DNA from: Setoptus koraiensis
Taxonomy: Eukaryota > Animalia > Arthropoda
DNA: 64,000 nt
Reading direction: 5' to 3'
Assembly (NCBI GenBank): GCA_048013815.1
Contig: CM106585.1
Span: forward strand, 13,392,001 to 13,456,000
The position numbers were made by a program, and so were the translations under genes. Below the pieces are notes generated by a model. It was given only the letters and a program-made list of their open reading frames with translations, made no database searches and had not been told where the DNA came from. Positions 44,762 through 53,401 of the stretch are shown here, one piece after another (positions within the stretch are counted from its first letter, which is position 1; each line of letters starts with the position of its first letter).

Positions 44762-47308
44762 TTAGCAAAATCCATTGTTTGCGCCGGCTAACAACAGTTT
44801 ACCATCATTCAATTGTTGTTGCTGCTGTTGCTGACAAAATTGTTTGTTATTCGCCAGGTTATGCAATGTTTCATCATCCTCTGACCCTCTCACGGGCGCC
44901 AGTATTCGCGGATTATCGGCTGATTGTTGTTGCTGCTGCTGGTGATGATTGTGATTATGACCATGATAGTCGTATCCGTTGCTAATGCAATTGCTGACTT
45001 TATTGTCGTCCTTGCTCTTGTTGTAGCTACCCAGGTCGTCGCCGTAATTGCCACTGTTGAGGTGATGATCATCTAACGCCATTGTAACATCGCCATTCGA
45101 ATAATTATTGTTGTTCTCGTCATTATCGTTATGATGGTTTGTATTGATGTTGTTGTTGTTGTTGAAATTCATTGCGTCATCTATTAGATCAGCGGCGCCT
45201 GTTGTCGTGTTGTAATAGTAAAAGTAAGACGATGACGTCAACGACGAAGGTGAACGCTGCTGATGGTGATGGAAATTGTGACTAGATAGGCGAGTGTGGT
45301 TCGCATGATTGTGATTCTTGTTAGTGGCGGGCGGCGCGCCGAACGACGACGAAGCCGATAATTGGGGCCCGTGAGTGGCGGAAATAATCGCGGTGTCGGC
45401 TGGCGAGAGGTCGCAGTTAACAGGTGTTAGCTGGTGCTGTTGCTGCTGGTCAGCACTGATGTAACAATTGTTGTAGCCCTGTTGTTCTGCATCTGCGTAC
45501 TGCGAATACTGGTTGGCCGGACGCGACAAACCGTTAGAATTGTCGAACGGCGACGGGTTTGCGCCGTGTTTTTGGGCGCCATTTGAATCGGCAACCTCTT
45601 GGGCGGCTTGTAATTTCTGCAAATCTGCATACTGACCAATGTTGGGATATTCCGAATACTCATTGACCACACTGAAGCACCCGTTTGCCGGCCCGTCGCT
45701 AGTTGTGATGATTTCCGCCGCTGCTGCTGCCGCTGCTGTCACCGGTGTTGTTGATGGCTTCTGGTCGCGCTGGCGCCTGTTCTTGAACCAGTTGCCCACC
45801 TGGGTGAGCGTGAGTCCGGTCTTTTTGGCCAGCTTGCGCTTTTCGTCGGGCGACGGGTACCTGTTGCACTGATAGCTGATTTTGAGCGCATTTCGCGAGC
45901 GTTCCTTGAAACAATACACGGTCTCCTCGCCGTCCCAGATGCCGCGCGGTGACGGATTCTTCTTGCGGATGCGGTACTTGTCGACGGCGCCCAGCAGCCG
46001 GCCCCTGAGGCACTGATTTTGTCTGTAGTGGGCCTCATACCAGAGGCTCTGCAACTGCTCGTGGTACTCCTGGCGAAATGTTTTGGTCTCGAGCAACTGG
46101 TACAATTCCTTGTATCGCTGGCTGCAAAAGTACACGTGAACCTGGGCCAGCATCACCATATCGCACTCGTACTGGCGCTGATCCTCATTCAATGAGTTAA
46201 GAAAGCTCTCCAATTTGCCTATTCCGTTTCTGGTCCGTCTGTAGCTGTCTTGCTGCTCGGAGTTGCTGGTGCTGGTGTCGAAACTGGCGCTGAAGCTGTT
46301 GTTGCTGGATGAGTCATTTTGTGATGCGGTTTGCCGGTCAGTTTTATCATCATCGACTGCTTGATGATTGTTGTCTTTGTAATTGTTCACGATTTGGTGG
46401 TTATTTTGGTTGTTTGCGCCGGCGTTGTTGCATTGTCTTCTCGTGTAGCGCTTGTTGGTCAGATGGTTGTGGTCCAAAGTGGACAAAATGGCCTTGCAAA
46501 TGCAACTTATCTGCTCTTGGCTGTAGGTGCAAGCGACCAGCGGGCCGTTGCTGTTGTCTGTCGGTAATTGATCGCAGTTGCTGTTGTTGTTGTTGTTGTT
46601 GTTTGTTGCGCTGGCTTGTGTTGTCGGCTCGTCTGTGGAAACGCTTGATTGCGGTTCATTATCGTCCGTCAAATCGGTGTCAATGTCGTCACTGGTCGAT
46701 TGTTGATTCAAGTTTTGCTCTAATTCGAACAGATGCTGCTGCTGTTCTTCCTGTTGTTCCTTTGATGGCGAGCTGACGTAGAGGGCGCTCGTTCGCTCTT
46801 CTATTTGTTTCTCGCTAGACAAGCAGTTTTCGTCGCTGTTGAGACATCCGGTTGTGTCAGTGATGCAACCGGTCTGGTCAGACTCGCTGATGAACTCGTA
46901 CGAGCCGCTTGCTGTTTGGTCGGGCGCAGCCGAAGAATTTTGAGAAGAAGAAGAAGACGACGAAGAAGACGACGACGACGACGATGATGATGATGATGAA
47001 GACGACGACGACGACGACGATGAAGATGAGGGCGACGATGGAGAGCGCGATGATGGCGACGCCGATGACAGAGATGACGTGGGAAAGCCCGACGAGTAGG
47101 GCGACGACAGAGATCGTAGTTGCTGTTGTTGTTTGTTTTTCTTTGCTTGCTGGTCAGTCTGGCTGGCCGCTGTGTAAGTGTTGGTGAGTTGTTGTTGATC
47201 GTGGCGCTGATTGACGAACAATTGATTGGCGCTCAATTGAAATTGCTCTCTCACTTGATGATATTGTTGCTGGTACGAGCTGCTGGTAACTCTGCTATCC
47301 CATGGCAT
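44762..47308 (-). CDS. Six4: Six4/5-class homeobox protein, long paralog (848 aa, intronless)
   Basis: SIX domain (EQISCICK...LWYEAHY...[16 protein letters not shown]) followed by a homeodomain starting ETVY, the tetrapeptide diagnostic for Six4/5, with WFKNRRQR (K50). Confidence 0.92.
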
Positions 47309-47384
47309 CGAAAATTAGACGGCAGTAGACGGGTCTACTACTACTGTTGGCAAGTTTGCGGCGGGCCGACTCAATTTGACTTTC

Positions 47385-47472
47385 ACTGACCACTGCTAAT
47401 TGATTCGACTGACCACTGCCAATTGATTCGACTGACCACTGCCAATTGATTCGACTGACCACTGCTAATTGA
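47385..47472. repeat. 23-bp tandem repeat ACTGACCACTGC(T/C)AATTGATTCG, about 3.8 copies
   Basis: Units start at 47385, 47408, 47431 and 47454. Confidence 0.95.
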
Positions 47473-50920: not shown

Positions 50921-51002
50921 CAATGATCGCGCAATGATCGCGCAACGATCGCGCAACGATCGCGCAACGATCGCGCAATGATCGCACAATGATCGCACAA
51001 TG
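50921..51002. repeat. 11-mer array CAA(T/C)GATCGC(G/A) x7
   Basis: Read directly. Confidence 0.95.
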
Positions 51003-52267
51003 GGCGCCACTCGGGCCGCCGGCAAACGAGCACGCGCGTCGAGTGCCGGTCGGTATCGTCGCGCGGCGTCTTCGGTCACTCAAGTTCGGCGTCGGTTGTA
51101 GGTTTGCGCGGCGGCCATCGGCGGGCCGGTTTCATCGGCGGTCGCCGTTGATATGGTGGCCATTGTGACGAACAATGCCTACATAATGCTTACATAATGA
51201 CAGTGCGCGCGCGCCGGGCAGCCTCGTCCAGGGCCACGGGCCGGCCTCGAGGCCGGCCGGTCCGCGCACAATAATGAAGCGATCCCGCGCGGCCGTTCAT
51301 ACAGAGGGGCAATTATATGAAAATTATATGAGAATTATTATATGAGAACAAGCGACAGCGTCGGCCCTGGATAGATACAGTGTGCCATCCATTGACTAAT
51401 GACATCCGACCGCGGCCGGCCGACAAGCGCGGTGAGCAGTGTGAGAGCGCAATTTGTTTGCCAGTGTCTCATACTTGTTGTAGCTTTTTATCGCGGAGTC
51501 GCTGCTCGGCGGAGTCGCTGCTCGACGGAGTCGCAATTTGGCAATTTGGCCATTTCGCCATTTCGCAGCCAATGAGCGCGTTATGTAATAACTCAGCGAC
51601 TGTTGTTGTTGTTGTCGGTGTCGGTGTTGTTGTTGTCGGTGTTGTTGCTGCGACGGCGGTGTCATCGTGATGCTGCCATGATACGCACGTTACGCAAGCG
51701 CTGGATGCGCCCGATATGTTAGTGCAACGATGATAATAAGATGCTCGCGCTTGTTGTCGTCGCGAGGGCTCGTCGCGCCGCCATGTCGTCGAATTATCAT
51801 TGCGCCGCCATGTCGTTGAATTATCGTTGCGCCAAATTATCGTTGCGTCAAATTATCGTGGCCGCATTGTTATTATACGCGGCGCTATGGTTGCGCCACA
51901 GTATCAAATGATATTGTAAGGCACACTGTAACTGCGACACCGGCGTCGGATATAGACTGCGCCGAGGTGTCACGTTACGCCGTTATTATAGGACGCTCGG
52001 CAGTGTCTCGTTTCCCCGTTTATAGCGAGCGGCCAAGAAAAGCAGTCACAATAGCAGCCAGCCAGAAGAGTCAGCCAGCCAGCCAGCCGACGCTTCGCCG
52101 GCCACCAGCCAGCTCGCAAGCCGCAAGACGGCGCCAATTGTGGCCATTGGAGCCACTTCATTTGTTTGCTCGCTCGTTGTTTCATTGCGTAATTCGGTGC
52201 GTAATTCAGCGCGTGATTCGGTGCGTAATTCAGCGCAAAATTGGGTGCAATTCGTGATTCAGTTCAG

Positions 52268-53401
52268 ATGCAAAGTTTCAACAAAACAACAGCCAGCCGA
52301 CTTCTGGTCGACAGCAGCAACTGCCCGGCCAGCTACAATTCCGAGCAGATAAGCTGCATCTGCAAGGCCATTCTGTCCACCCTCGACCACAGCTACCTCA
52401 CCAACAAGCGCTACACGCGCCGCTACAACAACAACAACAACGGCCAAAATGGGCCCCTCGCCAACAGCAACAATTACAAGCAGCAGCAAGACACTTGTTC
52501 CAGCAATCGCCAATTCGCCGGTGGTGAGCCGCAACAGGCCGCCGCCACCAACAACGACTCGTCCATCGGCAACAACAACATCAACAACAACAGCAACAAC
52601 ATCAACAGCAGCAACATCGCCGGCGCTTATAGTTTCGAGCAGCAAGACAGCTATAGAAGAACGCGGAACTCCATTGCAAAATTGGAGAGCTTCCTCAACT
52701 CGCTCGGCGACGACCAGCGCCTGTTCAAGTGCGACATGGTGATGCTGGCCCAGGTTCACGTGTACTTTTGCAGCCAGCGATACAAGGAATTGTACCAGTT
52801 GCTCGAGACCAAAACATTTCGCCAGGAGTACCACGAGCAGTTGCAGAGCCTCTGGTATGAGGCCCACTACAGACAAAATCAGTGCCTCAGGGGCCGGCTG
52901 CTGGGCGCCGTCGACAAGTACCGCATCCGCAAGAAGAATCCGCTACCGCGCGGCATATGGGACGGCGAGGAGACCGTGTATTGTTTCAAGGAACGCTCGC
53001 GAAATGCGCTCAAAATCAGCTATCAGCGTAACAGGTATCCGTCGCCCGACGAAAAGCGCAAGCTGGCCAAAAAGACCGGACTAACGCTCACCCAGGTGGG
53101 CAACTGGTTCAAGAACAGGCGCCAGCGCGACCAGAAGCCAGCCGGGCCGCATCCCGCGGCCAGCACTGGAGCCGGCCCGCTTACAGCCACCACAAGCGGG
53201 CCGCAAGCGCCCGGCGCGGCCACCTCCGCCTCGGTCAAATCGCATCCACTGACGCCCCTGGCCAGCATCATGGGCCGGCCCGACGCACACCACGCACACC
53301 CGCACCAGGGCCAGCAGTCGGGCCTCGGCCACACCGACCAGCAACAGCAGCTGATGTCGTCGCTGGCCTGGCACCAGCCGGCGAGCCAGTCGCTCATTTA
53401 G
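52268..53401 (+). CDS. Six4: Six4/5-class homeobox protein, short paralog (377 aa from ATG 52268, intronless)
   Basis: Same SIX domain and ETVY homeodomain. The ORF track starts at TTG 52241; the ATG is preceded by TCAGTT/ttcag (Inr or splice acceptor). Confidence 0.9.

Follow-up and report, generated by a model that had tools for sequence, protein, structure and literature searches.

A head-to-head Six4/5 gene pair in the mite Setoptus koraiensis, with a core probably homogenised by interlocus gene conversion

How could two neighbouring genes come to share a nearly identical core when their tails can no longer be aligned? This question is raised by a 64,000-nt stretch of Setoptus koraiensis DNA (contig CM106585.1; hereafter the window, to which all positions refer), in which two Six4 paralogs, a left one (L) and a right one (R), are placed head-to-head. 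An earlier interpretation made from the letters of the window alone (the sequence-only reading) ascribed this situation to an old duplication whose DNA-binding core is kept identical by conversion. Our analysis leads to a similar view: very probably, a lineage-specific head-to-head duplication of Six4/5 took place in this eriophyoid-type mite and was followed by interlocus gene conversion of the core.

The shared core and the silent-site step

Positions 52736-53140 of the plus strand were compared, ungapped, with positions 45755-46159 read as reverse complement. The alignment spans 405 bp and contains 7 mismatches and no indel, and both this alignment and the perfect 207-bp run within it agree to the base with what the sequence-only reading had described. 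The two arms of the tract are inverted, 98% identical and 6,576 nt apart, they both start in codon phase 0, and they code for all but the N-terminal quarter of the SIX domain, followed by the complete homeodomain. A distance of 4,960 bp separates the divergently oriented start codons at 47308 (minus) and 52268 (plus), so the distances of 6.6 kb between arms and about 5.0 kb between ATGs had been estimated correctly. Directly 5′ of the tract, nucleotide identity is 60-77% per 30-nt window, while 3′ of it L and R no longer align, as had been claimed for the tails. The 5′ boundary is located inside the SIX domain, at neither a domain nor an exon border. A repeat finder reported the same structure as an inverted repeat (I1) of 553 nt at 90% identity, which extends through the 5′ coding flank at lower identity, and a second arm pair (I2) of 106 nt at 77%, corresponding to the EQISCICK segment.

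The assignment of both genes to Six4/5, proposed from the letters alone, was confirmed by domain content. Pfam searches found SIX1_SD (PF16878) followed by Homeodomain (PF00046) in L and R, with E-values of 6e-30 and 1e-31 for the former and 4e-14 and 4e-13 for the latter, respectively. The SIX domain is thus directly N-terminal to the homeodomain in both copies, as is characteristic of SINE-class genes. The tetrapeptide at the start of the homeodomain differs among subfamilies, being ETVY in Six4/5, ETSY in Six1/2 and QKTH in Six3/6; ETVY is present in both L and R, and we take it as the mark of the Six4/5 subfamily. Likewise, the top named protein matches were SIX4/Six4, including Drosophila Six4 and, as the best one, SIX4 of the eriophyoid mite Fragariocoptes setiger. 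The pair is therefore composed of two Six4/5-type genes with intact open reading frames (ORFs), known here from DNA sequence.

Conversion is supported by the distribution of silent differences, estimated by the Nei-Gojobori method (NG86) on three colinear coding blocks, namely the tract and two homologous segments on its 5′ side, flank A and flank B. In the 135 codons of the tract, 398 of 405 nucleotides are identical, the proportion of synonymous differences (pS) is 0.053 (4.5 of 84 synonymous sites), the non-synonymous divergence (dN) is 0.008, and 3 of the 128 degenerate codons specifying identical residues differ. The corresponding values are 67/81 nucleotides, pS 0.53, dN 0.08 and 8/25 codons for flank A (27 codons), and 73/99 nucleotides, pS 0.86, dN 0.14 (0.136) and 11/26 codons for flank B (33 codons), which agrees with the many synonymous differences previously noted in the 5′ coding segments. 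Compared with both flanks together (19/51), differing synonymous codons are strongly depleted in the tract (3/128; Fisher p = 2e-9). The longest identical run comprises 69 codons and was matched in 0.02% of codon-state shuffles (p = 2e-4), and third positions are identical in 131 of 135 codons of the tract vs 18 of 33 in flank B. The tract hence combines a discrete boundary with silent divergence significantly below that of its homologous flanks, the pattern by which gene conversion is recognised, and the step in synonymous divergence (dS) along the paralogs that conversion had been predicted to leave is present (~0.05 in the tract vs 0.5-0.9 in the flanks). With flank divergence near saturation, here taken as ~0.6 of codons, silent change in the flanks (0.37) would exceed that in the tract (0.023) by a factor of roughly 24. 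The flank dN/dS of ~0.1 indicates that purifying selection acted on L as well as on R during most of the period that followed the duplication.

The seven mismatches occupy tract positions 208, 209, 222, 292, 294, 303 and 348 (window positions 52943, 52944, 52957, 53027, 53029, 53038 and 53083), and all of them fall within the 3′ 198 bp, which show 3.5% divergence. Such clustering has a probability of 0.007 if the mismatches represent seven independent events, and of 0.03 if the two adjacent pairs are counted as single events (5 events). Since the 5′ 207 bp are perfect and the 3′ part is not, the perfect run may mark a second conversion event, shorter, nested and more recent. As for the claim that the core is kept identical by conversion, the conversion itself is supported by the silent-site step, while its repetition is something we infer from the one or two events that can be detected.

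The following scenario could account for these observations. A single Six4/5 gene would have been duplicated as an inverted head-to-head pair in this lineage and, long afterwards, one or two non-reciprocal homologous recombination events would have taken place between L and R. A break in one copy would have been repaired on the other copy, inverted and 6.6 kb away, as a template and with a non-crossover outcome, and the repair would have overwritten ~405 bp, comprising most of the SIX domain and the entire homeodomain. The tract would be limited to the core because purifying selection had left enough identity for strand invasion and heteroduplex formation only there; its 3′ limit would correspond to the end of homology, and its 5′ limit to the drop of identity to ~75%. 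One possibility is that a first event covered all 405 bp and a later one at least the 5′ 207 bp. Ordinary conversion tracts are a few hundred bp long, with which the length of 405 bp agrees.

Features of the Six4/5 pair, with positions in the window
Feature	Position	Strand	Description
Six4 paralog L	44762-47308	minus	intact 848-aa ORF; ATG 47308, stop TAA 44762-44764
Six4 paralog R	52268-53401	plus	~377 aa from ATG 52268; ORF open from 52241; stop TAG 53399-53401
Left arm of tract	45755-46159	minus	135 codons, MVMLAQ...RDQKP
Right arm of tract	52736-53140	plus	7 differences from the left arm in 405 bp
Perfect run	52736-52942	plus	207 bp, identical between arms
L coding flank A	46436-46516	minus	27 codons, first SIX-domain helix; homologous to R 52343-52423, 83% identity
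R coding flank A	52343-52423	plus	homolog of L flank A
L coding flank B	46160-46258	minus	33 codons; homologous to R 52637-52735, 74% identity
R coding flank B	52637-52735	plus	homolog of L flank B
Divergent intergenic spacer	47309-52267		4.96 kb between the two ATGs

Read-level evidence and other explanations of the tract

A nearly identical patch shared by two diverged genes could also be created during assembly, either by cross-mapped short reads homogenising cores that are in fact as diverged as the flanks, or because only a single copy exists. The published eriophyoid assembly (47 Mb, two chromosomes), if it is the same as the one used here, was built from PacBio continuous long reads (CLR) with two rounds of short-read polishing, which leaves room for such an effect. 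We therefore turned to Logan contigs, assembled directly from raw reads (k = 31, no polishing), from four runs (X1, X2, X5 and X7) on positions 51400-54400. X1 and X2, belonging to different studies, each contain a contig of exactly 405 nt at exactly 52736-53140, with a depth of 275 in X1 and 323 in X2, compared with ~165 and ~175 in the respective flanks. The resulting ratios of ~1.7 and ~1.85 can be compared with the 1.69 expected for two copies if the seven differences are grouped in three bubbles, each reduced to a single branch, and with 2.0 if there are no bubbles; they are compatible with the seven arm differences being real, short of proof. Single-depth junction contigs (52697-52765, and 53111-53679 or, in X2, 53111-53479) have the expected 30-nt overlap with the tract, from which they reach the unique flanks of R with zero mismatches at the junctions. 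In X5, from a third study, both flanks and the tract are present in L letters on one contig of 5,406 nt; it has 33 letters other than those at 52636-53140 and then continues for 4.5 kb unlike the R tail, which implies that, in an independent sample, L runs uninterrupted through its arm in the orientation of the window. The L junctions are represented by this contig and by a word share of 0.91-0.95 in X1 and X2.

Contigs of three studies hence indicate that two copies with distinct flanks are physically present. Diverged cores would be expected to give two single-depth contigs, each continuous with its own flanks, instead of a collapse at the two tract boundaries at nearly double depth. Moreover, indels predominate among the errors left over from CLR reads, but the arms differ by substitutions only and both ORFs are intact. 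Since the raw-read contigs reproduce the tract, its boundaries, a depth of about two copies and the R junctions, an assembly or polishing artefact, which the sequence-only reading had named as a possible refutation, is very unlikely, and the identical core can be regarded as genuine.

Some observations on the same contigs deserve mention. X2 and X5 differ from the window by an insertion of a 12-nt repeat unit behind 52215 and by three nearby substitutions, and so represent a haplotype other than that of the assembly; the 12-nt tandem unit, at 52186-52248 just upstream of the R start codon, is variable in copy number, with one additional unit in these two runs. Depth in X5 is uneven, being 2-6 over R and its flanks (51627-54011), 31 in the L-bearing contig and 20 in the next downstream contig (54013-54400), for which amplification bias, a copy-number or haplotype difference, or a mixed sample are possible explanations. 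Run X7 was considered as a potential related species and rejected, as it contains the same sequence at low depth, in exact contigs of 165 and 330 nt. The part of the homeobox that codes for the recognition helix (window 53067-53134) is matched, with 13 of 68 letters different, by a contig of 3,355 nt in X1. This contig presumably represents a different SINE-class gene of the genome, of the Optix or sine oculis type.

The low silent divergence could also arise with no conversion at all, from extreme synonymous constraint, such as an overlapping regulatory or RNA element or codon bias, or from a mutational cold spot. The tract does coincide with the most conserved protein domains, and the cores of relatives mostly have a slightly higher G+C content at third codon positions (GC3) than the rest of the gene. 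However, when the same 135-codon core was compared between this species and three relatives, and among these relatives, 52-63% of the codons for identical residues differed, so silent sites of the core are free to change and no general constraint acts on them. In addition, the boundary lies within the SIX domain, away from its edge, no Rfam family matches the tract, and codon bias would be unable to make 125 of 128 degenerate codons identical. Of the explanations considered, this is the one to which we give the least credence. Conversely, the core may show the true, young age of a recent whole-gene duplication, with flanks and tails diverging very fast through relaxed or positive selection or slippage. 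The low-complexity tails are indeed prone to indels, and L carries derived replacements even within the core. Nevertheless, the proportion of same-residue codons that differ in the flanks, together with the low dN/dS, speaks for a long time spent under purifying selection, and the promoter-side spacer is devoid of inverted homology, making a recent duplication very unlikely.

The inverted arrangement of the arms further raises the prospect that they act as a recombination switch, in which crossing-over flips the 6.6-kb segment and identity is the result of frequent reciprocal exchange. The arms have the orientation, the identity and the shared codon phase that such a process needs, and since both are in phase 0, a flip would give two in-frame chimeric genes with promoter and N-terminal half swapped. 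The second orientation was not seen, and the sole contig that bridges an arm, that of X5 from another sample, has the configuration of the window, although this is a weak test, as contigs with k = 31 bridge the arms poorly. Furthermore, reciprocal exchange alone leaves the arms unhomogenised, and we consider this origin of the identity very improbable. Only marginally less improbable is the related idea that the arms form a polymorphic in-frame domain-shuffling switch, kept convertible by selection for a shared DNA-binding and Eya-binding core; if true, each flip would join the promoter and the N-terminal half of each Six4 gene to the C-terminal tail of the other.

Several points have to be set against duplication followed by conversion, which we nonetheless regard as by far the most probable explanation. 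The letters of R are visible in the contigs at one of the seven differing sites only (53083, in X1), because contigs drop bubble branches; at the other six, no Logan contig has the R letters, just those of L, and the R letters are given by the assembly and the depth ratio. The flanks contain only ~36 synonymous sites, so their dS is imprecise. No closer relative than ~70-74% core protein identity was found in three protein searches (with the whole of R, the core region of L, and the core plus flank B). Finally, an RNA run that would inform on the expression of both genes was sought among the listed runs holding the stretch, and none is on record.

Relatives, gene surroundings and direction of transfer

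Fourteen proteins (Logan, ENA, JGI) and the Fragariocoptes SIX4 share an N-terminal helix with the consensus MRYSIEQIQCICK, which is divergent in a few of them and missing from P0019, a protein that starts differently. In L, R and nearly all eriophyoid-like relatives, this helix is followed by a variable low-complexity insert and then by the remaining SIX domain. Relatives with such a split SIX domain are found among proteins P0003-P0022 and P0121, and the corresponding sites of the window are 52343-52735 and 46160-46516. Since nearly all relatives have it, the split arrangement ('EQI.CICK..' helix plus insert) predates the duplication. Single Six4 cores were found in loci L002, L003 and L004, where 10-20 kb around the gene were fetched, as well as in L001 and L005, which are shorter contigs with 5.7 and 1.5 kb beside the gene; no second Six4 copy was present in the sequence fetched around the gene in these five loci. 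A single Six4/5 gene as the usual arthropod state, taken for granted in the sequence-only reading, fits the three longer loci and the literature on arthropods without whole-genome duplication (PMC10726417). In the flanks, L and R are identical at 80% of residues, while either of them shares 33-48% with any relative. As the loci of relatives are single-core and, in the flanks as well, L resembles R more closely than either resembles any relative, the duplication is lineage-specific. By these comparisons, it postdates the divergence of the sampled relatives from one another, yet enough time has passed for similarity to be lost at silent sites, in the tails and in the spacer. The earlier description of the duplication as old holds in so far as the flanks are near silent saturation, yet when this gene is compared between the sampled relatives, its divergence is higher than that of the flanks.

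Gene order also changed at this locus. In L002 and L004, Six4 (+) is followed by CCDC22 (-) and ELO (-), the contigs of L001 and L005 reach no further than CCDC22, and the neighbours are different in Fragariocoptes (L003). In the window, ELO is located at 58751-59410 on the plus strand, 5.3 kb downstream of R and on the strand opposite to that in relatives, and CCDC22 was not detected. The strand change of ELO and the undetected CCDC22 imply a local rearrangement beside the duplication. By its length, similar to that of the single-copy gene of relatives, and by the neighbourhood of ELO, R looks like the parental-type copy, with synteny being only a suggestive guide in this respect.

The two genes are intronless in the compared part, and their proteins are predicted to have a near-equal DNA-binding and cofactor-binding core and unrelated tails. 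The tails of L are both long and of low complexity, comprising 264 aa at the N-terminus and ~330 aa at the C-terminus. Because no second in-frame ATG occurs upstream of the L SIX domain in the ORF translation, the 264-aa extension is, barring splicing, part of the gene. The possibility that the long tails of L reflect shared ancestry with the 765-aa Fragariocoptes SIX4 was rejected due to zero tail homology, and the extensions of the two proteins are accordingly independent. In the spacer, Pfam and Rfam searches found no match to a recognisable gene or RNA, and a repeat search found no inverted homology apart from low-complexity runs. It holds about a dozen short tandem arrays with periods of 10-27, for example 23-mers at 47385-47472, 10-mers at 48492-48574 and 11-mers at 50920-51002, which could be arrays of binding sites or merely microsatellite-like sequence. 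Neighbouring long ORFs, all on the minus strand, code for a PAS-domain protein of 1108 aa (59621-62947), a TCP-1/cpn60 chaperonin subunit (39396-40703) and an NRF-domain protein (26855-29572); being long and uninterrupted, they fit an intron-poor genome.

Base composition offers some indication of the direction of transfer. GC3 of L is 0.815 in the tract vs 0.57 elsewhere in the gene (p = 5e-8), in R it is 0.785 in the tract vs 0.81 elsewhere, and other long ORFs of the window have values of 0.42-0.59. In the homologous flanks, a synonymous codon ending in G or C occurs 11 times in R vs 2 times in L. By its GC3, the tract thus resembles R sequence sitting inside L, and R was possibly the donor and L the recipient, a direction that we propose with no more than moderate confidence on compositional grounds. 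This proposal is weakened by the GC3 of the cores of relatives, which is mostly somewhat above that of the rest of the gene (by up to 0.155), and by the four synonymous mismatches, at all of which it is L, and not R, that has the C-ending codon. Judged against all relatives, L has the derived state for both replacements (Leu to Ser before the homeodomain, Arg to Cys near homeodomain position 22), and hence they most likely arose after the conversion or were spared by it. It can also be mentioned that the region 50000-56000 is a local G+C-rich island (0.55-0.575 vs 0.39-0.50 in adjacent bins), and that R has a GC3 far above that of L outside the tract although L is only 5 kb away.

Comparison with known systems and significance

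Homogenisation of inverted repeats on one chromosome by intrachromosomal non-crossover repair is known from the inverted Hsp70 pairs of Drosophila and from the palindromes of primate Y chromosomes. There, whole genes or arms of many kb are identical, whereas L and R share a domain-sized patch in otherwise saturated paralogs. Closer parallels are provided by other homeobox genes. TPRX1 and TPRX2 are PRD-class homeobox paralogs of eutherians, placed in inverse orientation on the two sides of CRX, that underwent repeated conversion at their homeobox end (PMC8208926). Like L and R, they are linked and oppositely oriented, with a sharp breakpoint beyond which the remainder of the genes diverges, and their conversion tracts reach up to 492 bp and include the homeobox-containing part only (PMC8208926), which can be compared with the 405 bp found here. 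They differ in homeobox class and animal group, and also in that L and R are directly adjacent and head-to-head, with a tract that includes most of the SIX domain. The evidence is of a different kind as well: conversion of TPRX1/TPRX2 was established with trees of many species, GARD and GENECONV, while for L and R it comes from silent sites, composition and reads of one species.

Likewise, Dlxa and Dlxb of Capitella teleta are inverted relative to each other and share a conversion tract in their homeobox (PMC3199776). In both cases, a gene that is normally single-copy (for Dlx, in non-chordates) was duplicated in one lineage in inverted orientation, and high identity is restricted to the homeobox region. 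The Capitella genes are arranged tail-to-tail and their tract of 150 bp includes intron sequence, in contrast to the head-to-head arrangement of L and R and the longer tract that has no intron there. More than one Six4/5 gene in a chelicerate is also not unusual in itself, since spiders and scorpions have extra Six4/5 copies; these are, however, whole-genome-duplication ohnologues in separate SINE clusters (PMC10726417), in a work that uses the term gene conversion nowhere, while L and R result from a local inverted duplication in a mite lineage without whole-genome duplication. Altogether, the mechanism is a textbook one with direct precedents in other homeobox pairs, and the Setoptus locus is a clean but ordinary case of it.

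The locus deserves attention chiefly because Six4/5, normally present once in arthropods that have not undergone whole-genome duplication, was duplicated here in a single mite lineage whose genomes are among the smallest and most gene-poor of animals. In practical terms, short-read assemblies will break or collapse at the tract. The pair is a clean example of concerted evolution restricted to domains, in which the core stays constant while the regulatory tails are unrelated, and if trees or dS values were restricted to the SIX domain and homeodomain, the duplication would be given an age ~20-fold too young.

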